Positions 4,618 to 33,115 of a stretch of DNA of 35,672 nt are shown piece after piece. The DNA lies in NCBI GenBank assembly GCA_001642005.1, contig LWCA01000262.1, positions 1-35,672 on the forward strand, given 5' to 3'. How positions within the stretch are numbered: the stretch's first letter is position 1; the number at the start of each line of letters is the position of its first letter. Position numbers and translations under genes: made by a program. This DNA comes from Intoshia linei. Taxonomy: Eukaryota; Animalia; Orthonectida. The notes under the pieces are model-generated. The model saw nothing but the letters and a program-made list of their open reading frames with translations. It was not told the DNA's origin and made no database searches.

Positions 4618-7600
4618 ATGAGTCATTTTGATTTATCCAATAAATTAAAAGGTGTGGGCCCAACCATTGTACTACCCAAAAATTCTATCGATAACATTTC
4701 AGTTCTTCGCGATAAAACTGCTTTAAATGTTAATGATTCGGACACATTTTTGTTAAGATTTGCAAATACTTTTATTGAGGTAAAAATTAAAGTAAAATGT
4801 TAACATATTTAAGAAATATGACCGAGAAGAATTGCAAGAATTGCTCATGTGCCAGTCTTCAAATTGGTTGCTTTCTCAAGATGAATTCAAGTTTCCTATT
4901 GAGCAACCTGCCGGAATAATTTCGGATTTTTCTCATGAAAGTGATTTGGATGATGGTCTAGTTATTTTGTTTCCAGTTTTGAAATTTAACAAAGACCCAA
5001 AGATAATTGAAGAAAATCCAAATGATTTGTCTAACATTGAAAAATTCGATGTACGTGAAATCCATCAAATTATTAATGAACTTACTCACGCCATTTATGT
5101 TCTCAATCAAATTCCGTCTATTCAACTTCACAATGTACGTTATGGACATTTGTATTTTTCTTATTTTTTATTAGGTTTTTGATAAGAGTTCATCTGTTTC
5201 TATTCCTCCAGCCTTTTATGATACCAGAATTGGAAATATCATGATTGAAGTAGACTACATGATGAAATCTATTTGGCATGGAAGTCACTTTCCCTATGAT
5301 AAGAGAATCAAATTTTCAGAGAGGTGGAGAAAGAGCTTGGACGTAAACAAGTATGGTGTTTCTCACACCAAAAAGTCCATTGTAACCGAATTTATTAATG
5401 CAGGTATTTTTGTATCTACACTTGTACCATTTAATAACGGAAAATTTTTAGGATTGGTCGATATATCGATGGATTCTGACTATAAGAATGTGTTTGAGAC
5501 AATGTTTAATGAGAGTGAGGTGAACAATGAAACAGATGATGACATGGAATTTTTTATGAAACACGTTGATCATGTTTCGTTGATTTTAAGTTTTTATCAG
5601 GTGTGATAGACAATATATCAACCTCTTAATTTTATATTTAGAACAGTATTCGTAAATATAAGAATGCATATATAATAGACCCTGCTTCAACAATTGACTC
5701 CAAGATAAATTTAGACATGGAAGATTTAAACGAGTTTACGTATAATCGGTTAAATTCGAGACTTCAACTACAGACTCATCTTTTAAATAATCATTTAACA
5801 GATAAACGGATGATTGCGAGAAAGGTTCACTTGTTGAATTTGATATCATTTTTGACACCGTGTTTTATAAATTTACGTAAAAGACATTACATACCAAATA
5901 TATTCAATTTATTATCTAAAATGTCATCAGAAGAGTTAAAAACTGAACGTGAATTACCACCATTGATGTTGCAAAAAGGGTTTAGAGTTAACAATTTCAA
6001 ATACAAATCATATGAGTATTTTAATCTACATGGAGGTATTCAATTCGATATCGAAACCCCCGAAATACAGCATATTAATAAATCTTTTAATTTATTTTTC
6101 AATAAGCTTAATAAAGAAACTTCTTTATTCAACGAAAAGTTGCTAGAATTTCAACATCAACAAAAGGAAACAGCAAATCTTCCCATTGTTAAATTTGAAG
6201 GAAAATTGTAATCATTTATTTTCTAACGAGATTTAATGATGATTCACAAATGTTTCAATAATTTTTTAACATTTTTGGATGCTTCAAGTCAGTTCCAGGT
6301 CAATATTTCCATTTTTTATTGCATGAAAATTATATGTCAATATTTATTATTAATTTATTGGAAAATTTATTATTACTATATATTAAAAATGATACAAATA
6401 ACTCTGAAAATACGATTTTTTATCAAATTTTTAAAAGTGATGAAAGGTCTTAAAAAAATGATAAAAAAACCCTGAAAATAAGATTTTTCGTTAAATTTTG
6501 TCAAAAGTAATAAAAGGAACTTGAAAAAAAGTGGTTTTTGTTTAATTATGTCAGAAATCATAATAATATTTTAAAAAATAAAAAAACGACTAAAAATATT
6601 TTTTTAAAATTTTATCCAAAAATCATAAATTTAAAAAAATGTAGTATATTGTATACCTTGATAGTTACGTGTTTTTAAAATAATTTTTAAAAAATGATCA
6701 AATCACCCTAAAAATAAAATTTTTTATTAAATTATGTCTAAAGTAAGTAATTTTTGAAAAATTTAAAAATTATTCATTTTGAACATGTTAGAAGTTATTT
6801 TTGTACCACATATAAAAAATTTGACGGGACCGAACCTCAAAAATTTAATGAGAACATGTCAATATATAGTTTATATTATAAACCATTATTTTTAATGAAA
6901 AAATTTTAAGTGTCCAAAACACTAATTGATATATTTTAATGCCGGTTTTAATATGCACAAAATTAATAATACCCCAGTTTAAATAAGAATATTAATGTCA
7001 CATTTAGGTATTATTATTTTAAAATTGATATGGAGACGTTTTACATGCAAAGTCCACAAAAGCCAAAATGGGTTAACATTTTATCGGAAGAATTACTAAT
7101 TATGAAGAAAAAAATATTTCCAATGGATGATGGGCAATTGCATGATTATTTGAAGAAAATTGTTAATCCCAAAGTCACAAATATAAGAGTTTTTAAATAG
7201 TACACTACAATATATATAACGTGATTTAGAACTTATCTGTGGCATTGAAACTTTCTACCTGTCGGGGTATAGTATCAGTGTTTGATTCAATTTCTCATAA
7301 ATTGTCGACTGGCCGAATTGCTAAAATGGACGACAATGGTTTCAGTGCTATGCATTATGCAACAATGTATAATCAGCCTCACATCATAACAAAATTGATA
7401 CTGGCTACTGTGGATATTAATACAAAACGATCTACTGGGTTTGGTTCTGATGGTAATACTTTATATAGATTTTACATTAAACAATATTATAAGGTGCTAC
7501 TCCTCTTCATTTGGCAAGTGGTAGTGGTTCAGTAGCCTGTGTTTCTTGTTTACTTGCTAATTATGCAAACATTTTACTCAACGACAATCATGGATGGACC

Positions 7601-10600
7601 CCTATACATTATGCTGCGTATTACAACAATTTACCCGTAATTCGTCTACTTTTGCGTTCGATGGATACACTTTTGGAGATACAAACTAAAAATTCGTAAT
7701 TTTTTTCATTTTTATTTTTATAAAAACATAGACACAAATACACTCCCCTTTTATTGGCTGCGACGGCAGGGTCCATGGCTGTTGTGGAACTTTTATGTAA
7801 TTATGGTGCTTCATTGAACGTGGTGGATGGTAATGGAGACGGCATTATTCAATTGGCAGCTTTGAATATTCATACTAGTATTATTTCCCTTATCATGGAA
7901 AAATATGAATCTGTTTTGAACGTTTGGAATATATTAATTGGTAAATTAATGGGTAATTATAAAAAGTTATCAATTTATTTAGAAATGCTTTACAGTGAAA
8001 CCGAAAATCGAATAATGGCATCAATAAAGTGCTTAGAAGTTTTGTCTGTTGAATATGATTCATCCTGGAAACATCTTAAAGGCACTTATTTACTTTTTTA
8101 TGTAGTATTTTTACATATATTTTAGATGCGGTTGTTCCATTGGTGAAATTGTTACGCCACGAAAATTTTTACATTTGCAGCGTTGTTTTGTCTGTAATAA
8201 AAAATATTTCCAATGAACATGAGATCAGAAAAATAATCAGTGCAACAGATATATCCAAATGTTTAATCATTCTTTTATCTTCTAACAACGAGTTGATCGT
8301 GAGTAGGGCTGCTGTTGTCATGGTTTACCTTTATATATTTAATTAATTATTTTAAAAAGAAAAAAAATTTTTTTTTTTATTATTTTTTTTAGAGCGATTT
8401 AGCTACAGTTGCTGAAAACCGAGTTATTTTTGCTAGAGACGGTGCAGGTAAATTTCATTTGAAAGCATGTTATTGACATGGTATATTAAAAATATTTTTA
8501 GTTGATTTATTGCCATCATTGCTTATATCTGATGTTGAGGAAATTTTATCAAATGTAATTTCAGCAATTAAAAACTTGTGCATTAAAAATCCAAAGAGTA
8601 CTATTATATTGTTAATTACAAGTCAACATTTTTAGATCAAACTAAATTTATCAAAAATAATGTGATTGAACCGCTTATTGAGTTTTTAAACGTCATGTAT
8701 GGTATAGTTTTAATTTTTTTGTGTAAAATAAAATATTTGTTCATTAATTTGCATTTAATTAAATTTATAATTTTAAGTAAATTTACACGGGTCTGTTGCA
8801 CTCTGTATTGCTGAATTGGTACGGAATCATTCAAACAATCAAAGCAAGTTTTTACAGGCTGATGTCATCAAGTTTAATTTTGCATTGTTTGTTTATTAAT
8901 TTGTAAATTTAGACACATGATTATGCTTTTGAGTAAATCATTCAATATGAAAACTCAAGTCAAAATTGCTATTGCCATTGAAGCTTTAGCCCATAATAAC
9001 CCAGATTCTCAGAAAAAATTTTTAGAGTGTGATACTCCTAAACTATTGTTATTGATGATGAAGGTACAATTACCCATATTAAGACAGTGATTCTGAAAAT
9101 TCTGTTTCTTGTCATTCCTTACGAATAATTAGAAATTAAAAAAAGGACAATTGGGGTTTTTGATCCGTAAGATGTGAGTTTGGGAGGTTGAAATATATTT
9201 TTTTAACACCCCGGAACAAACTGTAATTGAAATGTGAACTTTATAAAATTCTAAGACTGGTAGTTATTGAAATAAACGATAACACACAGACAAACGAAGC
9301 ATATTATATATGTAAGGATAACTTATGGGATAGTTTTTAAAATCATAAGAATTATCGTAAATTACAATCTAAAAAAAGTACATTTTCATAATAAAACTAC
9401 AGATTACCCTTTTTTTAAAAAATGAAATTAGTCCTAGAATTTTAAAAAAATTACAGCTGTTACAGTTATATCCAGTTAACTCATTTTTATTTTTACACTC
9501 ATACACACATACACATTATAGTTAACTTTATACTCAAAAAATTTTAATCTCACAAAGTGACGCCTTCATGGTTAAAAATGTATAAAAAATTATAGGAGCC
9601 TACAATTTCCCATCTGACCCGGGCTGCTGCTGGTGCTCCACGGTTCTGCACTTAGTTAAATCGTTAATTTTTGAGTAATTAATAATTAATGTTGAATTGT
9701 ATAAACGTTCCATTGAAGAGTGGATTCATACAATCTCCCAGTTTTATACCGACTGATCGTTTATTAAAACTAACAAATTCTGTTTTTTTGTATTTGCAGG
9801 GTGGTAGATAATAATAAATTTTGTTCTACCTCTCTGAAACAATTATAGAAATACACTGTACGAGTGGTTAAATCTAATAAATTTAAATTTAGAAATGGTC
9901 CATCGAAATGAAGGAAAGGTCTGCATTAGGTTTGATTATACTTTATTTACATGTTAATATAAAAGTTATGTGTAGCTATTTGGTCATTGGCGGGAAACAA
10001 ATTATCTCAAAAAAAGTACATTGCATCCAGAATAGGGACACCTCAATTGATTGACATGACTCTAAGTACATCTCAAATTTTGCACTTTATCAGTAAATTG
10101 ATCTAGTGTCCATTTGTAAACATTAAATTAGGTTGTTTATGTATGGACGCACTATCTCAGGGAGATTTTGAAAACCAGATAAAAATAAAAAACCATGACG
10201 GCATTGGACCAATAATCAGACTTTTGAGTATGTTTAAATTATTTCTGTTAACAATGAAATAGAGATTCATCAAAATGATTCGCAGTTATTACTAACAACT
10301 GTCATCAAATTAATTGGAACACTATGCTTGGGAGTTGCTCATCGATCAAATTATCAAACTCAAAGTAAAATTGCATCTGAAAATGCAATTCAAATTTTGG
10401 TCAAAATGATGAATAGTTGTGAAAATTTCAATGTAAAAATTGAAATTAGCCACACCTTGGCTTGTATTATTATGAACAACCCTACTAATCAAATGTTTTT
10501 ACGAAAAAAAACAAATTTTAATTTGTTTTTATTATTGAACATTGTTGGTTCAGATGAAGAAGTTTTTAATCACAATGTATCATTGTATTAATTTTTTAGG

Positions 10601-13530: not shown

Positions 13531-14044
13531 TTAAAATGTATAACTTAAAATAACAATTTTATCGTGAAGAAATTTGGGCCGATAAGTAGAAGATGAATCT
13601 AGGATTTTAAAACCAATAAATCGTAACATTCTCAAAATTTTGTTAAAATGGAGATTGGTTGAATCAATACAAAATAAGACAATTTTGCATTTATCATAAG
13701 AATTTTCGATTTTATCAATAAATGTAATTAGAGCATCTCTAGATCCTTTAATAAGAAATTCATTATCAACCATGACGTATATGGAGTCATTAGAAATTTT
13801 AAAACAAGTTTCGTCAGGAATTATGCATTTCCAGTTTATATACCGATTTTCGTTTGTGTTTGTTTTTATTGTAATAATACCGTCAAAAATACTGCAGTGG
13901 CCCAGCGTCACGTTGCTTAGTAGTCATGAACATTGAGTCGTCCCTAGAAAAGATTTAAATTACAGTACAAAAATCATACTTTGAATTCTCTATATTTAAC
14001 ATTGATGTTTCTATCAACTCTTTCAACTTTTTATGTTGTAACAT
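13531..14044 (-). CDS. OAZ: Ornithine decarboxylase antizyme (ORF1 + ORF2 joined by programmed +1 ribosomal frameshift; about 158 aa)
   Basis: ORF1 starts at ATG 14044, has a 36-nt intron at 13979-13944, and reads ...RDAGPLQYF-TGA (41 codons). The +1 frame continues DGIITIK...GSRDALITFIDKIE..YDKCKIVLFCID...KILRMLRFIGFKIL...P......ILSYTF, matching the ODC_AZ domain (GSK.....LL..AEE, L...F.FLGF.I). Confidence 0.93.
13882..13903 (-). other. Programmed +1 frameshift site GGG CCA CTG CAG TAT TTT TGA C
   Basis: TTT at 13888-13886 and TGA at 13885-13883. The upstream GGG CC context parallels the metazoan antizyme GGG CCN .. .. .. TCC TGA site. Confidence 0.9.
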
Positions 14045-15056: not shown

Positions 15057-15872
15057 CTAATTTTCAATATTAATAAAATTAATTTCTAAATAAGTAAAAT
15101 TTAATACATTAATAATGTAATATGATAAAAATTTACCCTCTACAAAATATGCCATATTTTAATATATTAGCATATAAAACTTACTATTTAAACGGTCTTC
15201 TAAATTGATTTTGAATGAATTAATTAGTTAACGATTACATACAATTTATGGCATATGGACAAAATGCGTCCCCCGATACTTTTGATCCGTGATACAATGA
15301 ATACACGGATATTAGTTATATGATTTTACTAAAATCATAACTAGGATGTCAAATTTTTTAGTGGACCCTCTTTATTGTAATATTTTATGAATGATAGTAT
15401 ATGAAAAAATATAACATTACTTACTATAATTAAAGCAAATGTAATATTAAAATTAATGAGTCAAGCATATATTTTTATTTTAGGTATACTTCCTGATTAA
15501 TAAAGTAGGTAAAGTAAATTTAAAATACAATGATATTTTCACATAAATGTAACAATTAATATTAACAAAAATTACCTACTAGATTATATTTATATATTGA
15601 CGAATATATATGTTTCATTTACATTCTACAAATTGAATTTATTAACAGTTTTAATATTAATTTACTCATCATATTAAATATATTATTATCATATCATATT
15701 AAAAATTATTATTAAATTGAAAAAAATAAATAAAATACCCACTAAACTTTAAAATTAAAACTAGCCAAAAATATAATATTTAATATTACAAGCTTTAAAA
15801 ATAATTTATAAAAAATAATAATTATAACATAATTTAATGTAATTTTTTAATAATTACTTAAATTATCTCCGT
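15057..15872 (-). other. Microexon array of paralog A (seven 3-nt exons, two 15-nt exons)
   Basis: AG|exon|GT at 15872-15858 (15 nt), 15792-90 CTT, 15741-39 TGG, 15625-23 AAT, 15578-76 TAG, 15492-90 GAA, 15423-21 TAA, 15199-85 (15 nt), 15139-37 AGG, and terminal exon 15085-15057. Confidence 0.8.
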
Positions 15873-18800
15873 CTATAAATGTATGGTTATGTATTATTAT
15901 TTATAATACCTTGTAAATTATTATCTTGGCAACTATTGTCTGTACAATTCTCTAAAAAATTAGTAAAATATAAAAATTCAAACCTTTGCAAATCTCACCA
16001 TCGAGGTAGAATCCAGATTTGCACAATAAACACGTTTCTCGATTGTCTTTACAATTGCTGCAATTTTCTATAACACATTCTAAAATTTATAATGTAATTA
16101 TATATATTACTATTAATAAATTACTTTCACATCCTTTTGGAATAAATTTGTATCCTTCTCTGCAATTTGTACATAATACTCCATTAGTTGATATACATCC
16201 TTCTACTTCTTCGATACCTAGAAATGTATACACATCTTGATAGACAAACTTTTGCACGTTGAACCGTCCTTCACAAAGCCATTCAAACATATTGAACATT
16301 TCGTTAGTTTATTTTCGTAGCAGTTTTTACAATTGGCAATTTCACAAACTACATATTAGTTTATACATGAAATTGTACGGATTGGAATCATTTACACCAG
16401 TGACCACCAAACAATTACAGGCAAACCTGACCTGCCATTTTATAAAAATTATTATTAATCAATGATTAGTAATTATTATGACCCTCATTAACTTAATAAA
16501 CTTGTGAAATGCGGATATTGTGCTGTTGATGATGCAACTATTAATACTATAATCACATCTAGACAATTAGAAACTTATTATTAATGCAAATATTAGTAGA
16601 ACAAATCAATATTTTTAATGTTCGATTTTTGTCTGTTTTTTATCATTTTGTTTGGAAAGTAAATCAAAACGTTAGTGGTAGTGATTATGCTCGGGAAAAT
16701 AACAGAGACGCAAATTCCCGGGTTTCCCAAATAAAATTGTTGAACAAATTAAAAAATAAATAATATGCAACATTTTGTTGAAATATGAATGTAAAGGTGA
16801 TAAAGCAGTGGGTAAGGTTTGAAACCAAATGAAAATGAATAAACATAAACTATAGATGAAACAAACAAATAATTCCATTTATAAAACAAATGAAAACCAC
16901 ATTAAAAAATAATTAATTAATCAAACAATTGATAGTTGAGCTGATGTGTAGTGAGGGCAATAGCTAAAAGTGAATTTAATATGGAGATGTTAAGAATAAT
17001 ATGTTTTACAAAATTTATAAGTAACGAAACGAGAACCCGTTTAAAGGACAAATCTATAAACATGTTATGTGTTTTAAAACACTTTTTAAATATTATCACA
17101 TAAACACACGTATCAAATAAATTTTTTTTATATTTCTCGGAAAATCACAATCACTAGGTAGTGGTCACTGATCAATACCTTCACATGTAGTTTCGTTTAC
17201 AAGTGTAAACCCATCAGTACATTTCGTACAAAATAGGCCATTGCACTTGGTGCAATTTTGAATTTCAGAACAATCTAATTAATAATTTAAGATATTTATA
17301 TACATATTTATCTGATTTACCTGTGCATGTTGAATTTTTTAGATAAAATTCTTTGTAGCAATGTAGACAGGTTATACCGTTACAACTATAGCATATTGAT
17401 TTGTCGCATTCTAGAAATGTAGAAAAGTTACATTTTAGTTTAATATACAGTGCATCAGAGCTACTTCACCTTTTGTCTAGAACGTCCCATTTTATACGTT
17501 TTTTTGTGACCCGAATTTTAAATATTATCGAAATACTGCTATTTAATCGTTAGACCCAAACCTGATATGGTTGTGAGATATTGAATAATATACACTGTAT
17601 ATCCTTAATAAAGATATTGTATGGATTCCTTACATACATGTACAGGACACTGTACATTGTACAGTCAACTCTCTCTATAAGAACAACTCAAAAGACTCAA
17701 CTCAACTACAAAAGAAGACAACTACAATACTTAGAGAGAGTCGAAAATTAGTGTAGTGCATAATAAAAATGTTAGCACATTAGAGCAGAAAATGTACTAT
17801 ATATTGAAAACTGTTTTTATAGACAGTGTTCTTATAGACAGAGTTTACTGTATATAAAGTAAAAATTTCTAAATATTTATGTGTTTTAAATATTTATTCA
17901 GAAAACATACGACCCAGAAATTTCAAATATAAAAATTATAAATGAGTTTTATCCGACTTGGATAAAGATCTGGTCTGGTCTCTAATAAAGTGTCAGATTC
18001 ATGGCCAAAACCCTAAATTACCAAATTTTTTTTATAAATGAAAAAATAATAAAGAAATTCATAGAATTTTAAAAAACACAAATTCTCAGATATTTTTTAA
18101 AATCGTGAGCATTATCATAAATTATATCATAAATAACTGACATTTTCACAGTCAAAACCGTAAATGAACAATTATATTGAAAAATTAAAAACCTAAATGT
18201 TCTAGAATTTAAAATATCTCGCAGCTAATATAGAGATTTCCAGTTAATATACACAAAAAATTTCTATCCCTGAAAGTTACTCATTCACAATAAAAAAATA
18301 AATACTATTTTATCTTTTTTTGAAAGTTTACCTACTGGTTTCTACTAAATTACAAAATAAGCAATATAAATGTATAAAATCCAATAATTCATTTTTTGTA
18401 AAAGAAAATTGGTTGCTTTAATGAGCAACCGAAAAAATCGTCGCGGTTTTGAAAAGATTCCATCATATAAAATTTATATTATAAATAAACGATAGTTTCA
18501 CATTATAAATAATCTAAGATAGAAAATGATACGTGCGCATATTTTCTCTGTCGTTAGAAAAAAATCGACATCACAACTTGTACAACTATTTGGTTTTTGA
18601 TTCATGCATGTTTTACAACTAGGATCACATTCTAAAAATGGGAATTTTCAAATTTTAAATTTTTACTTATATAATATGCTGTTTGTCTGTGTGTATGTGT
18701 GTTATCGTTTATTTCAATAACTACCAGTCTTAGAATTTTATAAAGTCCACATTTCAATTACAGTTTTTTCCGGGAATTTTAGAAAAATACATTTCAACCT

Positions 18801-21800: not shown

Positions 21801-24173
21801 TAATATTCAGGGCATATGAAAATTCAGAATTAAAATGATTATAATGAGCCAATTATAATAGAAAATGTTTAAAAGTTTAAAAGTTAAAGATTTTTTAACA
21901 TTAATTATTTTTAATTTTTAATTAGCATTCAGAAAAATGGTTCATTATCTCGAAGGCACGATTGTACGACCTTTGTGTATATGTCTAACAAGATTTATTA
22001 CAAGTTTCATTGATTATATTACAAGTTATATTAGTAATTTTTAGAAAAGGTGTATTTATCTTAAAGGCTGTACGTATTATTATTTTTTAATGGCTAATAA
22101 TAACGTTCTATAAGTCAATCGCACCCAGTCTTTTTGATTTTGCAATGCGTTTCATATAGTTAAAATATTCGAATCCCTCATAATTTTGTTATAATAATTA
22201 TTTACCTTTACATTCCGACAAATCAGTTAAATATTCATTATCCAAACATGAAGTACAGCTATATGATTTGAAATTGCAAGTTTTACAACTTGTGTCACAA
22301 TCTATAAAAATAAATTGAATAAATTAATAAATTAATAATAAATTAAAAAGAATCGTTTTAGTTTATATAACAGTATATGGCTTTGCCGACGAAAGACGTT
22401 TGCAGATATTTTTCATTATTTTATTAATCACAAAATTAAATTTAATTTTTTATATTATATTAAAAATTGTTTTAAAATAAATTAACAGACTTTTGATAAT
22501 TCACTTACCAAAAATGCAAATAATCTAAATACACTTCAATTATTTTCGAAATGTTAATGGGAGTTATATTACAGTTGTATGTTAAATTTTAGTAAATGTG
22601 TAAAAACTCGAAGTAACCAATTTTTGTATTTCAAGTATATAAATTCATTCTTAATTTTTTAGAAGTGTATGATGAATATTAAATTTACATTTTTCATTAT
22701 AATTCAAAAAATTTAATAAAAAGTGACGGACGAAATATTAAAATTCGTTTGACCGGTAATATGTAGATTTCTGAGTTTAAATTTTTTTCTCTAGGTTACC
22801 TGGAATAAACAGAACCAGAGTAATCTTTTTTTAAATTATAGGATCATCCTTTACTTATATAAAATTAAGTGTCTGTGTGTTACCTTTTATTTAAAAATTA
22901 ATTATGAATAAATGAGTATATAATAAATTTGTTTTTCGACCGTGAAGGCGTACCTTTTTGAGATTTAATTTTTTTGTGTAAGTTAACTGGAATAATTATA
23001 TTAGATGTAATTTTTTTAAAATTCAATGACTATTTCATTGGTTTTTTATTTTTCAATAATTGGTAATTTGTGGTTTTGACAATGAAGATAGAAAATTTAA
23101 ATACAAAAATTGATGACACTGCAGTTATTTTGAAAACTGTATGAGATTGTGAATTTTTTATAATTCAGGGATTCATAAATAATAAATAATAAATTATTTT
23201 TTATTCAATTATTGGGCGGCCAAAACTCATGTCGTGGGTCAGCTTTTGGATCATTCGTTTAAAATGAATATTAAATGATAATTTTATTTTCTTGTACCGT
23301 AACATTCTCCAATCGATGCAGTCTCATTGGTATAAATTAAGTACTGATTAGTTTGACATTCTAGATATTTCAAAATTTAATGAATTTAAATTGATTATGT
23401 ACCGATGCATGTACCATTTAAGATGTATCTATCATATTGACAATTTATGCATGATGTTTCTTCTATGCCTATGCATTTATTACATGTTTCGTGGCAAACT
23501 ACAAAAAATCTTAAAACTGAAAATCGCGTAATATAAACCATAACAGATACCCAATCTTGTTGATTTATCTGTTATAACCAGAGAGTTTTCTTCAGGGCAA
23601 ACTAATTTTGAATTTCAAATTTTATTTAAAGCTGGATACGTGTACACTTTCCAGTATTCAAAAATTGTGGAGATGTACAACTTGTGCAATCGGTATATGT
23701 TTGATTTTGACACGTTAAGCAGTTTTGGTGACAACCTAGAATGCGATTTAAATTAAATTAAAACAATATTTTACATGTAAAATCTATAAATATATATCTA
23801 TTATAATAAAACCTTCACATCCACCATCTATGTTCAAAAATTCAGTATCTTTGCAACTAAGGCAATTGATTGCATACTTCTCGTTACAACTTTGACAGGT
23901 AGCATGACAGTCTATATTATTTTAATTGTATTTAAAATTTAAGTACGTGAACAAACTGAAAACCATTCCATAAAATCCATTTTTGTATACCATTTGTATT
24001 GATTTTCAGAGCAATCTAAATTAAATTAATTTTCTGATTCACCAAGATGTACTTTGTGATTCTGAACCCATTATACCTGATACTATACCTGTGAGGGCGT
24101 ATGAAAGAGATTCACCATTCGATCCGTTATATAAGCAAAGTATAAATCCAAAAATGAAAATATTTTTATGCAT
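15057..24173 (-). CDS. Secreted furin-like cysteine-rich repeat protein, paralog A (about 34 exons including 3-nt microexons)
   Basis: ATG 24173 begins MHKNIFIFGFILCLYNGSNG (signal-peptide-like). Exons encode CHATCQSCNEKYAINCLSCKDTEFLNIDGGCE, CHQNCLTCQNQTYTDCTSCTSPQFLNTGKC, CSEIQNCTKCNGLFCTKCTDGFTLVNETTCE and similar repeats. Introns checked are phase 1. The predicted stop is TAG at 15059-15057. No protease or transmembrane domain was seen. Confidence 0.82.
17662..17850. mobile_element. MITE, pogo/Tigger-like (Tc1/mariner superfamily), 189 bp
   Basis: TIRs CAGTCAACTCTCTCTATAAGAACA / CAGTAAACTCTGTCTATAAGAACA (22 of 24 match), with TA on both flanks. Confidence 0.85.
17995..18300 (+). repeat. 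Internal fragment of the Helitron-like family
   Basis: Two tandem units plus the tccagttaatatacacaaaaaattt block shared with 2700-3020. Confidence 0.6.
18663..18945 (+). mobile_element. 5' half of the Helitron-like element
   Basis: ttacttatataatatgctgtttgtctgtgtg...tcttagaattttataaagtccacatttc is near-identical to 12142-12400 and to the reverse complement of 9135-9318. Confidence 0.75.
22847..23170. repeat. Rearranged Helitron-like fragments (5' end on +, internal part on -)
   Basis: atcctttacttatataaaa...gtgtctgtgtgttacc is followed by the inverted internal segment gaccgtgaaggcgt...gttaactggaa...ggtaatttgtggttttgac. Confidence 0.6.
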
Positions 24174-24355
24174 TTAAAAAAATTTACAATTGAATTAAAT
24201 AAAGTTGATAATGTACATAAACGGAAATATATATAGTGGAACACCTGTTTATGAAAGTTACCAATAATTATTGTAGTTTATTTTATATTTTTGCTACAAT
24301 CAGCAACGTATTAAATCCAACTTCGATATAAATAAAATTATAAAAATAATATTTA

Positions 24356-25461
24356 TTAATAATGCTTTTTATTTACAATTTTATTTATTTTGATAAACGA
24401 TATTTCTAAAATATAAAATAAATTATACTTATTACTTTAAATATATTACCCTCTAAAAACATTATACATATAAGTACTGATGACAAACAAATGAATATTG
24501 TATTTAGTGTAATAATATAAATACAATAGAAATAACCAGTTATGGGAAAGTGTTGAATGTTGGAAGGCTACACTGACGTCACAAAGAACGCCGTTAGAAG
24601 TAAATATTTTGTAATTTTTTTCATCGGTTAAAAGCTGGTCGGCTTAAAAACACATGAATTGGAATTACATCCCATAAAAAAGTAACATGATTGCTAAAAT
24701 CTGGTAAGATTTACTTAATTTTTGTTCTAAATTATACAATTATTTAAAATTGCTCAGAAGACCACATTAAATCGCGAATTAAACTCTACTTTCCCATATC
24801 TGCAATATATCACATAATATGCAAATAATCTAGATAGAAATTTTAATATTTTTCTATGTTTACCTTTCAAGCGTCTTACTAAATAACATTTTAAATTTAA
24901 ATAATATTGATAACTAAAAATGAGAGAAAGTAAAAACAATACTTACTATGATTTATTATTAATATTAAAAATATAATACAGCATTCAATTAAATATTTTT
25001 ATTTTATTGTATACTTCCTAATTAATACAGACAATAAAAATCAATTTAAAATACAATGATATTTTTACATACATGTAACATAATTAATATCAAAAAAATT
25101 ACCTACTGTATTATATTTTTATAAATTTATGAATTTAATTTAGTGTACGGTATAATTGTAATTTACATTCTATAAATGAAATATATTAAAAAATACAATG
25201 TAATGTTTAAATTAAAACAATTAAATAAAATAATTTACCTACTGAACATTAACATTAAAACAAATAAAAAATATATTATTGAATATTACATGCTTTAGAA
25301 TAGATTAAAAAAATGAGCCAAAGAAAAAAACATACATTAGCCATGGTTATGCATTTACCTTCTAAAATTTATTAAATTAATATTATTATTATGAATAATT
25401 TAATAATTATATTAATCTGCAAATAATATAAAAGTTTTATTATTACTTGAATTGTGGTCAT
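24356..25461 (-). other. Microexon array of paralog B (eight 3-nt exons, two 15-nt exons)
   Basis: AG|exon|GT at 25461-47 (15 nt), 25361-59 AAG, 25292-90 CAT, 25241-39 TAG, 25169-67 AAT, 25105-03 TAG, 25017-15 GAA, 24945-43 TAA, 24878-64 (15 nt), 24452-50 AGG, and terminal exon 24405-24356. Confidence 0.8.
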
Positions 25462-28400
25462 CTATAAATTTATTATAAAATGTATTCACTACATTTTTAA
25501 TCTAACCTTGTTCATTATTTTCTATGCAATTATCGTCAATACAGTTCTCTAAAAAAAATAATAAAATTAAAAATTAAAACCTTGGCAAATGTTTTCATTG
25601 AGATAAAATCCAACTTTGCAATATAGACACGTTCCGCGACTGTCTTTACAATTTCCGCAATTTTCTACGCTGCATTCTAATTTTCATATTGTAATTAATT
25701 ATTTTATGAAATTACTTTCGCATTCATGTCCAAGAAACTTGTACCCTTCTTTACAATTAGCACACAATACTCCATTAGTTGCTGTACATCCGTCTACTAG
25801 TTCGATACCTAGAAATGTATACATGATTTAATAGGCAAACTTTAAACTTTTGCAATCTGCGCCGTCTTTAACAAACCCGTCTAAACACACTGAACATTTT
25901 AATAATTTGTTTTCATAGCAGTTTTTACAATTAGAAATTTCACAAGCTAAAAATGATTTGAATTTTTAATCTCTTAAATATTTTGTAATTTCTGCATTTA
26001 TACCATCGCATTGAGTTTCATTTATAAGTGTAAAGCCATCAGAACATTTCGTACAAAATAGACCATTACACTTGGCACAATTTTGAATTTGAGAGCAAAC
26101 TTAAAATTAAAATATTTTATCAACTTTAAATACCGATACATAATCCGTTTTGCAGGAAATAGTCTTTGTAGCAATGTAAACAAGTCACGCCATTACAGCT
26201 ATAGCACTTTGATTTGTCACATTCTAAAAATTTTCATTTTCATACATAAAAATTTTAATTTAAAAAATGATACCTGCGCATGTGTTTAGAGTGGTCAAAT
26301 AAAAGTCAACGTTACAACTATCACATCCACTTGGCCCTACCGCATCACACGTTTTACACGAAGAATGACATACTAATAATATGTATTTTATTTCAAACAG
26401 TAGCCATTACCTTCGCATATCTTACTACCGACGAAAACTGTAGGGTTTAGATAATACCCATCTAAGCAAGCTGTACATGTGTCTGCATTCGTTTCGCATT
26501 CTCTGCAAGGTTTGTTGCAAGCTATATTATACTTTTATAATTCGACAGTCCAGTGTTTCTTGTATGGAGTCCAAAGACCCAAGGAGTATAATTTTCAAAA
26601 GGGGTTCACGAAATATTTTGTATTATTTATGTATAAATCGTTATGATTTAAATAACATAATGTTATGTTAATAATTATCACAAAAATGTAATGTTTATTA
26701 ATTTGTTTTTATTGTCAAATTTATCCTACGTTAACCTTATTGTTGGTAAAATGATAATACCCAAACATTTCTTTAATTCATCTACAAAATAACGACCAGT
26801 AATGCACAATTTGCAAGTGTGAATTGTTCCTTCACATTCAGCACAAGTTGGATCACAGTCTATATTAATACATATTACATTATACAGTGTTGTGCTCTGA
26901 GATACGAGCTATTGAGCAACTCAATGAACAATATTGTGCATCTAAATACGGACTAGTGTGCATTCACATACAGATAATTATTTTAAATACATTTTCTGGA
27001 TAACTTAATTTACAAGATGTTGCTTAAATTTAATTGTTAATAAAATGTTTTCAAAGTTTTCATTACTTGCACAATACATCGTATGTACCTCGTATCTCGG
27101 TGCACAACTCTGTAATACATATAAATTAAACATTTTTAATAAATTAAAATTAAATTGAATAATTTATTGATAATTTTAATTGTTGTCCGACCCATTGAAA
27201 AGTCACCGTAGAAAATATAAATTTATTATTACTAATAATGTATTAGTATATGTATTTGTAAAAACTACCTATACAATGAACGTGTGATATGATATAATAC
27301 AATGAACCGTTGGCGATTGTCTGTTTTAGTTGCGTTCGCTTACATTCTAAATTACTATAAAAAATAATTCAAATTTATTTTATAATTAATTTCTCTCAGA
27401 CTGAGCCATTATTGATTAGCCGGCCAGTTTGACTGGTCTAAAAAATTAACTACACCCTACAAAAAATTTTACACTAAAATATTTTTGTAATAATTAAGGA
27501 TTTAGAATACCATATACAATTAAATCTTAAAACTTTTATAGTTGGGACAGTCTTTATTATATTATTTAATCTACTCAATACACAGGTATTAAAAATGTAA
27601 AATAATATCACCTTCACAGTAACCTGCACGCGTTTCATCGTTATATATGGTTAGTACCAAATTACATTCTAAATATATGTAAGTTATTACAAATATTATA
27701 TTAAAATGTATTTTAAACTATAATTACTTAAATATATATGTTGCATAGAATGTGTACAACTGTGAAATATACACATTACACGGGCAAATCGTAGAATGTA
27801 TTTGACTAAGAATGTGTCTTAGACGCCAATTCAGAGTTAAATACATAATTGATGCTTTCCTAACAACGAATTTACCAATTCAGTTAAATTAATAAGCTCA
27901 TGTTTATTTTTAAATTGATTTGTATTTGTAAAACTTTCATTTAATTAATATCAAACCATTTAATTACGATTTTTTTTGAACCAAACTTTCAAGAGGGGTT
28001 TTTAAGATTTTTAGAAAACAAAATAATTGATTAGTTATCAAATGATTTCTGTGTCAAATATCGTGTTTCCAATTATAAATTTTATATTTAATAAATTGAA
28101 TTAATTATTTTTTTGTTTTATAAAATTGACAGTGGTAGAATTTAAAAAGCCCAATACGTAGTACTGTTTTTCGCAGGGATGTTGAAATATATTTTTCAGA
28201 TTCCGAATTTAAGTCCTTCAGGGTCAAAAACCCAATTTGCCCTTTTGTTTCAAAATAAAATCAACCCAAAATTTTAATACAACATAAATTCTGGAATGCG
28301 CTGTAAAATCATCAACATTGTCGTAAATCTCAGCGTCAGAAACGCACACATTCTTGGTGAAAACCACAAATTACCATTTGTTTTAAAATGAAATGTCCTA

Positions 28401-31400
28401 AAATTTTATAAAACATAAATTCTGGGATAGTTTTTAAAATTATAAACATTATCATAAATATGAATTTTCACTTTCATTTTCATTTTCACAAAAATAACTT
28501 TTAATATATTATAGACCAATATTTTTCAAATGTTTAATTTAAAATGTAACTATTCATCCTACAATAACAAAAAAAGTGGGAATTGACAGTATACATTGTA
28601 TACTATACATATTTGAAATACCAAAATATGCATTTTAATTTCATAAATTGATTCCTTCGATTTTATTATTATTTATACACTCATTTCTCACTTTTAATAA
28701 GTTTAGAATCAAATGAAGTATGACTGTTATTATTATTTTAAATTTTGAAATTTACTTCAACGTTGGATAACATTTCTTCACCCGAAAAATGTATTTAAAC
28801 AGACTGAATCCGTTAATTATCGATAAAAAATATTTTCAATTTCAAATTAATCAAGCTAGTATATTATATAACCATGATTCCCACCAGGGTTTTAATATGA
28901 AACCTTCACAACTTGTAGTAAATGTTCGTAAATATTTAGGCTCGAAACAGGAAGTACATATATTTGCTTTTTTTTTACACGTTCTGCATGATTCATCACA
29001 ATCTAAATATGTATAAGATTAAAAATTTAATTATTTCAACTAGCTATGTTTATATTGTATACCATTAGTAAATGACATAATAAAAAAAGATTTTATCAAG
29101 AAATTAATACAATAATTCAGTTTTTCTTAGCCTTATTATTAGTGTTATCGATGTCTTTTATGTGAATGTAAAACGTGCAAATAATGTAAAAGTTAATTGA
29201 TTCATACTAATAGAATTACTCATAATAGTCAAAATTGACTAGGAAACCTCCATTATTCCATTTTGGGTACATTAATTTTTATTGTCTTGATAAAGTACCT
29301 GACTACAGTAATTTCTAGTATTTTAATAGTACAGTATTTTAAATTTCAAGGAGAATAATTTGTCATCGAGTCAACTTTATAGTTATAAAATTCTTGACAA
29401 AAACTTACTATTTTAATTTGAAACATTACAAGAAATGTATTATTAGGAAAAAGCTTATTTTATAGCTTGAAATTTGAAACAAAAAATCTATCAATATTCA
29501 TGATTCTCTGAACCAATACATGTAAAATTTTAATTTTTCTCAGGGATGATAGATAATAATATAGATTTTATATTTATCATATAAATTACATAGAAAACAA
29601 TTAACAATATCTGAAAAAATTTTCCATTTTTAAACATGGGCGAGATAAATGTTAAACTGAAATCGGTGAACCCAATGGTCCACTGCTATAATCTATATTA
29701 CATTGATCTGTAGTTGTTATGAACAAAACCCAAAAATTTTCTTGAAATGACCCATTTTGTAGGTTTGTATTAACTAATTATATAACTTACTTAAAGAGCT
29801 TAACCAAAAACGAGACAATATGGAAATTTAATATAATGGGCACTAATAAATCAAACAATTATTTACAAAAAAAAATAAAAAATAATAGTAAATAAAACAT
29901 AATTATTAATTACATATTATAGAATGTATAGACGACACGATATTTAAATAAATGATAAAACCACAATTAATTAAGTTATTACGAAATTAAATTATTAGTT
30001 CACTAAAATAGATATTACCTCTACAAAATCCAGCAGATAGTTTATTATCAGTAATTGTCAAAAATTCCCTTTCAGTACACTCTTATAACATTAAATTATA
30101 TAAAAAAATAAATTACCAATACAAATTCCACGTGGACCCATACCTGGTTCACTGTTATTAGAAAATACTAAATGTTGATTTTCACTGCAAGCTAAAATTT
30201 TTAAGTTATACACAATTTGACTTTATTTTACAAACACACTTTCCCCTTTTTAGTTCTTTGTCTATAATTGTATAATATTGGTTAATTGCACAAACTAAAA
30301 TACTAAAGTATTACATTTTAAGAGTATTTTATAAATCCATATTAATAATTTAACTGCATATACGAGTTAATTATTTTCTGAAAGTATTGACGGGTAATCA
30401 TTTGTACATTTTGTAAGATTAGAACGACATATACACTTAAGGGTTGTGAATTTAAAAAAAATTGAAAAAACGAAAAATTTTATCTCATTTGTAATGATAG
30501 TTCTTTATTAGGAAATAGGGATTTTAGGGTCCACGCCGAAAAAATATTGTCGACCACTATTACATATATACATCAATTTTAACAGTTTAATTTTAAAAAT
30601 TGCATTCTTGAACTCGTTACAATTACATTTATCTGTCTAGTCATTATAATTGTATTTTAAACTAAAAATAAATAAAACAATTTTTTTGAAAAATTATTTA
30701 AAACAACCCAGAAGGCCCAATTTCTTAATTTGTATAAAACAATTATTAACTAACCTCCACATGTATCATCTTCTAATAGTAAATTCCCGTTTTCACAGCT
30801 AGTGCATTTGGTAGATCTTTCTAAGCATGTCAAGCATGATTCATTACAGTCTAAAATGTGAAAAATAAAAAACGTTTAGACCTAAGACATGACCCATAGT
30901 GGGTTACGTGCCACCATATAGCAGGCATTCTCAACCCTTTTTTGCTGTAGACCCTAAGATGATATTACAAAAAACCTGTGGACCCCCAAAAAAATTAATA
31001 ATAATGATAATGTTAAATGAATCATTACATATGGGTGAAACTAATGATGGTCGAAAGACATGGAGTACTCTATTTTTGCAAGATGATAAACTAGATGAAC
31101 TATTAATATTAACCTTTAACTCATCAATGTTCCCAAAATGAAACATATTTTTCAAGTATTGTTTACAGTGCATTATTAATTGTTTACTACATATTTTATC
31201 AGATCAATAAAAAGTCTATATTATCTATCTTCCGTGTAAAAAATTAATATTTTATAACCCTTGATTGATGTTTCATAGAATCATAAATATTGACTGATTT
31301 TTTGTCCCATTTTCAATTTGAAATTTAAAGCTTCTTTTAATAATTAGAAACTTGGCTCAGTCATAAATTTTAATAAAATAATTAGATAAAACCGCTGCTC

Positions 31401-33115
31401 CTAAAATAGAACAATGGAGATTTCCCAATAAGTTTTTATACTTGTAAGTAATTTAATTTAGTTAATACAAAAGAATTTATTTTTACATGATTTGCACGTT
31501 TTATATTATTATTTCTGAGCCTTTACGTTTTAAAAACGACTCTATGTTACTGAAAATGTCTATAATATGTAATAAATGTATATAATGTTCATGGAACCCC
31601 AAAAAAGAGTTATGGACCCCGTTGATAATGGCTGCTATATAGTGCCACGAAATGTTTTTTAATTGTAAACACGGTCAGGTACAGGAACTGTAAAATTGCA
31701 TAAATAATAATTCAAACAGGAATTTCTGATCGTACTGCAGAACTCTATTGACCACCTTACAAAAATTGACATGTGAAAAGATTCAATTTAATGTTTAATT
31801 TCATAATTTTAATTTTAAAAAATTTCATTTTTATTATTTTTCCATATACGCTTTCAAGTTTTATAAAAATAACCTTATATACTGATCCTTATCGTACACA
31901 ACTTTAAACCCAAAAAATAGTAAAAATACATTTTACCGTACATACCCTTACATTATTAATTTATACCTCCACAGTGATATTGATCATTCAAATATTGTTT
32001 AGCAGTACACGATGTACACCGAATTGAATTGAACTCGCAAGTTTCGCAATTATCATTACATGCTACACATGTCACATTACATTAAAAAAATATAGTATTA
32101 CGTTTGCATGTTCCACGGTCTAAATACATTTTCTTTTCACATTCTAGAAAATTTATATTAAAAATAAGCTTATCGTCGTATACCGATGCATGTATTTTTG
32201 AAAATGATTCTATCGTCTGGGCAGGTTGTGCATTGATGAAGTTCTACTCCAAAACACGTCTTACATGTCTCGTGGCATTCTAGAAAATGTACATTAGTGC
32301 ATAATAATTTCACTTATAATAAATGTAAAGTATACCATAACAGCTACCAGATCTCGTAGTTTCATCTATAATTACCAAATAATTCGATTCAGGGCAGTCT
32401 ATTTGTACTTTTAGTGATAGAATACGTCATGTATTAATATTTATTATTCCATATTAGCTATGGCTGCATTAGTTTTCAAATTAAAAAATTTGAAAAAATT
32501 TTTATGTGGGAAAAATCGTATTATGTATGTTTTGTCTTTGCATTCCCGTTTCATTGATATCAATAAAAAACATTAACCTTTTAATTAATATCATACATTG
32601 ACATTTTGAATATATTATGATTGTATGGCTGTCCGTACCAAAATATTTAAAGGACCACTTATTCTATATTTGATATAATGAATTAATACCTAAACAATGT
32701 CCATTTTCAAAGTATTTTGGGTTCTCACAGCTAGTGCAACCACTTACTTCCGCATTTTTACACGTTTTACAATTATCATGGCATGCTAGTATATACAATT
32801 AAAATTATATAAATTAAAATTAAACCATCACACGTTTTAATTTCACTCAAAAATTGATCAGTGTGACAAGTCAAACAGTTCGTTATATAATGCCCGTTAC
32901 ACGTTAAACAATAAAAGTGGCATTCTATGTTCATGTAAATAAATTAAAAAATTTTATACGCTCACACTTTGGTAACCAATGTAATGGGTCAGCAGATCCA
33001 AAATATTCATATTCACCTGATTCACAATCTAAAATGTCAGTTCCTGTTTCATAAATACAATACCAGATGATCCATAAAATAATAGACAAAACAGAAGTAC
33101 TAGTCCAAATTTCAT
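24356..33115 (-). CDS. Secreted furin-like cysteine-rich repeat protein, paralog B (tandem duplicate of A)
   Basis: ATG 33115 begins MKFGLVLLFCLLFYGSS (signal-peptide-like). The exon series is colinear with paralog A (e.g. CSQIQNCAKCNGLFCTKCSDGFTLINETQCD; CSVENCGNCKDSRGTCLYCKVGFYLNENICQ). The predicted stop TAA at 24358-24356 lies only 182 nt upstream of the paralog A ATG. Confidence 0.82.
26885..27112. mobile_element. MITE, Tc1/mariner-like, 228 bp
   Basis: TIRs CAGTGTTGTGCTCTGAGATACGAG / CAGAGTTGTGCACCGAGATACGAG (21 of 24 match), with TA on both flanks. Confidence 0.85.
28165..28460 (+). repeat. Internal fragment of the Helitron-like family
   Basis: Tandem units (cttcagggtcaaaaacccaatttgccc; aaaaccacaaattaccat...gtcctaaaatttt...gggatagtttttaaaattataaacattatcataaat) are shared with 2600-2860. 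Confidence 0.6.

Follow-up and report, generated by a model that had tools for sequence, protein, structure and literature searches.

The locus and its two genes

In the orthonectid Intoshia linei, whose animal assembly comprises 41.6 Mb at 26% GC, contig LWCA01000262.1 (C261) carries two tandem paralogs, here called genes A and B, both on the minus strand. The contig is the window of this report, that is, the whole stretch of 35,672 nucleotides (nt) analysed, and the element of interest within it is the 3' tail of gene B, which appears to be assembled from exons that are nearly all a single codon long. Gene B corresponds to A3Q56_02706, whose product, the hypothetical protein OAF69562.1, was recovered by a protein search with the last cysteine (Cys)-repeat exon as query; the same search returned no transcript-derived protein bearing the tail, and an annotated gene A protein was not found in the protein collection. 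Both genes begin with a short hydrophobic N-terminus directly after the ATG and continue with about 18 Cys-repeat exons of 90-111 nt, all in phase 1-1. Against the Pfam family VSP (PF03302) the gene B protein scores 46.5 bits at a gathering cutoff of 31.4, which places it in the VSP or furin-like repeat class, and from its sequence we propose that the product is a secreted protein with a putative signal peptide followed by some 18 furin/VSP-like cysteine repeats.

ATG 33114 to stop 24356, minus strand: gene B
25581..33114, minus strand: body of gene B, furin/VSP-like Cys repeats in phase 1-1 exons, each of 90-111 nt
ATG near 24172 to stop 15057, minus strand: gene A

A predicted chain of very short exons at the end of gene B

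Downstream of the last Cys-containing exon and a 15-nt exon, gene B holds an array (25361-24943, minus strand) of seven consecutive units of the form YAG-NNN-GTA, followed by a second 15-nt exon, an eighth 3-nt exon (AGG) and a 50-nt terminal exon. The predicted exons, with the single long intron of the tail, are as follows.

25548-25507, minus strand: 42-nt exon, phase 1-1, the last to contain Cys; present in the public annotation
25461-25447, minus strand: 15-nt exon (D-D-H-N-S), continued past its donor in the annotated model
25361-25359, minus strand: 3-nt exon AAG, specific to B, with the top acceptor score of the array
25292-25290, minus strand: 3-nt exon CAT (CTT in A)
25241-25239, minus strand: 3-nt exon TAG (TGG in A)
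25169-25167, minus strand: 3-nt exon AAT (same in A)
25105-25103, minus strand: 3-nt exon TAG (same in A)
25017-25015, minus strand: 3-nt exon GAA (same in A)
24945-24943, minus strand: 3-nt exon TAA (same in A)
24878-24864, minus strand: 15-nt exon, the I-R-R-L-K part; its counterpart in A is 15199-15185, and the Arg and Leu codon changes are synonymous
24453-24863, minus strand: intron of 411 nt with a dispersed repeat; its counterpart in A is just 45 nt
24452-24450, minus strand: 3-nt exon AGG (same in A)
24405-24356, minus strand: terminal exon, 50 nt, with the stop TAA at 24358-24356

A first-pass annotation made from the letters alone had placed these exons, and all its gene B coordinates are correct on the minus strand; joined locally, the chain translates without a stop into the peptide it had read, and the tail is devoid of Cys. 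Every tail exon is bordered by AG and GT(A), and all those upstream of the terminal one are 3, 15 or 42 nt long and of phase 1-1, hence symmetric. The introns around the 3-nt exons are AT-rich, 44-85 nt long and furnished with ordinary GTA...YAG signals, the sole exception in length being the 411-nt intron. The repeat within the latter shares 78% identity over 76 nt with contig C197 (4874-4949) and is probably a MITE-like (miniature inverted-repeat transposable element-like) element with introns as its insertion sites; 'tttttgacc.tgaagg' is the core of a comparable short element, which lies near 28200-28300 of the window and at 5600-5640 of stretch L011 of contig C207. An AATAAA starting at 24357 overlaps the gene B stop. 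Only about 185 nt separate that stop from the gene A ATG (window 24172-24358), and because the gap is so narrow the promoter of gene A must sit inside or very near the 3' end of gene B.

The same series in paralog A

Paralog A ends in a series that matches that of B apart from the AAG unit, as the first-pass annotation had also proposed.

15057..15951, minus strand: paralog A tail, whole
15951-15910, minus strand: 42-nt exon
15872-15858, minus strand: 15-nt exon
15792-15790, minus strand: 3-nt exon CTT
15741-15739, minus strand: 3-nt exon TGG
15625-15623, minus strand: 3-nt exon AAT
15578-15576, minus strand: 3-nt exon TAG
15492-15490, minus strand: 3-nt exon GAA
15423-15421, minus strand: 3-nt exon TAA
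15199-15185, minus strand: 15-nt exon
15139-15137, minus strand: 3-nt exon AGG
15085-15057, minus strand: terminal exon

Among the units shared by the two genes, the AG is kept in seven of seven and the GTA likewise in seven of seven, even though the intervening introns have largely drifted apart: in six of the nine intron pairs the similarity does not exceed that of shuffled sequence, lengths differ (69 vs 113 nt and 61 vs 44 nt, for example), and large repeat insertions occupy different tail introns, one of 411 nt in B and one of 221 nt in A. The retention of AG and GT across introns of differing length, on which the earlier reading had leaned, is thus borne out. Within the 3-nt exons themselves 19 of 21 bases are identical (7/7, 5/7 and 7/7 at the first, second and third exon positions), and both changes sit at the third position of a codon; one of them is the difference already noticed in the first pass, T-TA in B vs T-TG in A, both Leu, which is real in the sequence.

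One intron departs from this pattern. That between TAG and GAA (25018-25102 in B, 15493-15575 in A, both minus strand) is 84% identical between the paralogs in its interior, vs 74% for the coding exons. The window gave no Rfam hit, and neither the intron nor its counterpart in A folds better than shuffled sequence; the conservation could stem from an element that controls splicing or from gene conversion acting locally. As to how such arrays originate, tandem duplication was considered and is not supported, the introns inside an array showing no mutual similarity.

The additional unit of gene B deserves separate treatment. Where A has a single 65-nt intron (15857-15793), B has 85 nt, the AAG and a further 66 nt, and the A intron contains no internal AG, as the first pass had observed. 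Including AAG would give the peptide S-K-A-L; omitting it would give S-T-L, close to the L-T-L of A, in which case the Thr codons of the two genes (ACA and ACT) would be synonymous. A single insertion or deletion of about 85-90 nt, comprising the unit and half of each flanking intron, would explain the difference between A and B, by gain or by loss; the intron halves that flank AAG are not significantly alignable. The splice scores of AAG are good, and the chance that so strict a motif arises in a 150-nt intron is, by an estimate from background counts, about 3-4%. AAG is listed as a candidate exon whose sequence is real. Of the earlier proposal that a one-residue indel here corresponds to one exon, the B-specific AAG in the sequence stands, and its use as an exon, gained or lost, is a possible reading.

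Spacing, strand and coding signature

The pattern AG-NNN-GTA occurs seven and eight times in the two arrays of about 1 kilobase (kb) each, compared with about 0.84 per kb in shuffled sequence. When YAG-N(k)-GTAW was counted for every k from 0 to 18, seven hits in B and six in A fell at k=3, none in either array at k=1, 2 or 4-8, and none at k=3 on the opposite strand; the k=0 spacing arises only as a by-product within TAG units. Scored with a splice-site matrix for which 28 ordinary introns of genes A and B served as the training set, and on which the scores of AAG also rest, the acceptors and donors of the microexons fall within the range of real sites.

Whether the units carry protein-coding information was judged from the tails of A and B with their exons joined locally, which gave 21 alignable codons. 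In the predicted phase-1 frame neither gene has a stop, whereas stops number 9 and 5 in the two alternatives. Counted in the predicted frame, the differences fall 5/3/13 on the three codon positions, and the proportion of synonymous differences (pS, 0.64) exceeds that of nonsynonymous ones (pN, 0.26; one-sided Fisher p=0.01), an excess that the other frames lack. The 15-nt and terminal exons alone give the same pattern (p=0.03), and for this reason constraint next to splice sites does not fully explain it. For the large Cys exons of A and B the corresponding values are pS 0.53 and pN 0.20, with codon-position differences of 55/42/83, so that, judged on these comparisons, the tail seems to be under as much constraint as the gene body.

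Further arrays in the genome

The A/B tail itself was found at no other locus of the assembly. Two more distant paralogs, on contigs C207 and C1069, possess a homologous 42-nt exon with 3-nt units of their own immediately after it. These two have in common tgtag-AAA-gta and, further on, TACTAG-gttgact, in otherwise unalignable sequence, and between those anchors lie four 3-nt units on C207 and one on C1069. The genome-wide comparison of microexon number that the first pass had called for thus yields arrays with differing counts in both, and because arrays occur there with unequal numbers of units, both the position of the array in the gene and the change in unit number recur. In the C207 gene (gene C) the tail can be traced only as far as a candidate 9-nt exon, beyond which the sequence is interrupted by a repeat and by the remnant of a Tc1/mariner element. 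Downstream of that array, at 7123-7164 (plus strand) of stretch L011, a short open stretch resembles the catalytic motif of a Tc1/mariner transposase (..QQDNAP.H..) and marks the transposon remnant.

Genome-wide there are 25 occurrences of a strict triple motif, vs one in a reversed control; a loose version is barely enriched (78 vs 62), and only the stricter one separates signal from background. Two regions stand out by strand: C1593:4000-12000 has 38 YAG-NNN-GTA units on the plus strand vs 1 on the minus, and C197:1-10000 has 27 on the plus strand vs 0. When the 38 candidate units of C1593 are joined, they are open solely in the phase-1 frame (0 stops, vs 4 and 2 in the others).

Elsewhere in the window, other open reading frames were seen at 4800-8200 (plus strand) and 13531-13911 (minus strand), and ankyrin-repeat-like stretches at about 7239-8125.

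What the tail most probably is

Taken together, these observations make it probable, in our judgement, that gene B ends in a real microexon tail maintained by selection, its splicing being predicted from the DNA rather than shown by RNA. The last 28 or so residues of the protein would then be encoded by phase-1 symmetric microexons, eight of 3 nt and one of 15 nt, and thereafter by a short terminal exon. Since an exon of 3 nt has no room for the 3' and 5' splice-site complexes simultaneously, intron removal would most likely proceed sequentially by intron definition, a mode with which the median I. linei intron of 57 base pairs (bp; PMC6543705) fits. Including or skipping any unit would never break the frame, because each is a multiple of three and of phase 1. 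Skipping could therefore change the tail by single residues, and gain or loss of one unit would amount to a one-residue indel with a recoding of the neighbouring split codon (S-K-A-L in B vs L-T-L in A). The broader proposition, that splicing of serial single-codon exons with introns of about 60 nt is routine in I. linei, and that in its secreted-protein families exon number varies between paralogs, the gain, loss or skipping of exons editing tails residue by residue, seems to us evenly balanced.

Several points weigh against a spliced and selected tail. The selection test is small, with just 21 alignable codons and p about 0.01, and the first and third bases of every 3-nt exon border splice sites, which alone could favour change at the second. 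Three of the intron pairs of A and B are still alike, so that slower divergence or gene conversion may explain part of the conservation. At the DNA level a shift of 1 nt slightly improves the alignment of the 15-nt exon pair and would put the bases they share into different frames. A look-up of RNA sequencing runs for 24200-33000 of the window listed none. In the public gene model the ending is another one, with translation continuing past the donor at 25447/25446, and a few bases inside the intron after the 15-nt exon there is an AATAAA in B and an ATTAAA in A. Such signals just inside that intron in both paralogs make a short isoform ending there possible.

The alternative that fares best, unlikely as we consider it, is that the AG-NNN-GTA units are conserved stepping stones or decoys which aid removal of the region of about 1 kb, and that the main messenger RNA (mRNA) joins 25447 directly to 24405. 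Such a region far exceeds the 57 bp median of I. linei introns (PMC6543705), the direct join is in frame, any skipping keeps the frame since all units are multiples of three in phase 1, and the coding signature of the terminal exon would survive even if every unit were skipped. Moreover, three of the B units (AAG and both TAG) end in AG before GT and are possible zero-length ratchet sites; five of the eight, on the other hand, cannot yield a zero-length exon. For pure stepping stones the distance from AG to GTA would not have to be exactly 3 nt, and yet none of the distances 1, 2 and 4-8 nt occurs; nor does this account sit well with NNN bases that are all but two identical between A and B and change only at third codon positions.

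It is more doubtful still that the public annotation is right and that transcripts read through and are polyadenylated in the first 'intron', the motifs downstream being non-functional and shared by descent. The annotated protein does end in this way, the AATAAA and ATTAAA just described lie a few bases inside that intron, and the look-up of RNA runs came back empty. The public model of gene B keeps the 42-nt and 15-nt exons, omits all the 3-nt exons and reaches a stop 12 codons after the donor (25447-25409); this read-through tail is not conserved, having 12 codons in B vs 3 in A. To our knowledge gene predictors do not model 3-nt exons, which counts against taking the annotated ending at face value. 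Motifs that were non-functional would scarcely all persist in order while six of nine introns have diverged to shuffle level, nor would they be expected to be specific to strand and spacing and to frame a coding signature, and two further paralogs have arrays at the equivalent position of the gene. The last 12 residues of OAF69562.1 are most likely translated from intron sequence, and the model is probably truncated or mis-terminated. That the arrays are decaying relics of a once-functional microexon tail, now mis-spliced in both paralogs, could draw on the big repeat insertions in the tail introns of both (411 nt in B, 221 nt in A) and is very improbable, since no splice dinucleotide has been lost, neither copy has an in-frame stop and pN lies below pS.

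In favour of a genuine microexon tail, then, the first-pass claim that the arrays are real and under selection holds as far as conservation and a coding signature confined to the predicted frame can carry it; the splicing on which it also depends is deduced from sequence.

Relation to known systems and significance

The implications, should the prediction be true, are considerable. Seven serial 3-nt exons would mean that a metazoan spliceosome defines exons smaller than its own footprint, repeatedly and accurately, and the order and mechanics of such splicing would be directly testable in a tiny genome. The annotation of I. linei, and probably of other parasites, would be missing coding sequence and truncating proteins. 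Were single-codon splicing routine, no other protein-coding architecture known in animals would be as finely divided, and current views on the minimum size of exons that a spliceosome can process serially would be challenged. The comparison of A with B, for its part, offers rare evolutionary evidence that single-codon exons may be selectively kept, and gained or lost as units. A literature search found no paper linking Intoshia with microexons or micro-exons.

Short exons as such have precedents. Inclusion of a 3-nt exon is documented in vertebrate genes such as RPS24 and MAP4K5 (PMC12686416, PMC8632122); those exons are single, usually regulated and set in long introns, in contrast to runs of at least seven consecutive single-codon exons. 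Recursive splice sites, or ratchet points (AG-GT), resemble the gene B units in that a 3' splice site abuts a 5' splice site and neighbouring introns are removed stepwise, but at a ratchet point no base remains in the mRNA, whereas the gene B units have exactly 3 bases between AG and GT, with conservation of a coding type.

The nearer likenesses are to parasite genes. In the bicycle effector genes of aphids the second codon position is where nearly all internal exons begin (PMC9168663), and these and the megacycle effector genes share with the gene B tail and the C1593 array many serial microexons starting at that position; bicycle products, like that proposed for gene B, are secreted parasite proteins. 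Unlike gene B, however, bicycle genes belong to hemipteran insects, their exons are not single codons, and they encode wholly microexonic proteins with paired CYC motifs. The closest known system, likened by architecture, appears to be the micro-exon genes (MEGs) of Schistosoma mansoni, which have exons of 3-81 bp (PMC10526429). There, as proposed for gene B, a secreted parasite protein is encoded with very short symmetric exons, which can be skipped without harm to the frame and which have a conventional exon on either side, one for the signal peptide and one at the 3' end. MEGs differ in that their coding sequence is mostly microexonic, with exons mostly of 6-36 nt and introns of up to 5 kb; in gene B only the last 28 or so of about 640 residues are microexonic, the exons are nearly all 3 nt and the introns 44-85 nt. 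A run of at least seven single-codon exons, separated by introns of about 60 nt and making up the tail of a gene that is conventional elsewhere, is thus matched fully by none of the systems compared, and the likeness to both MEGs and bicycle genes hints at a convergent use of symmetric microexons in the secreted proteins of parasites.

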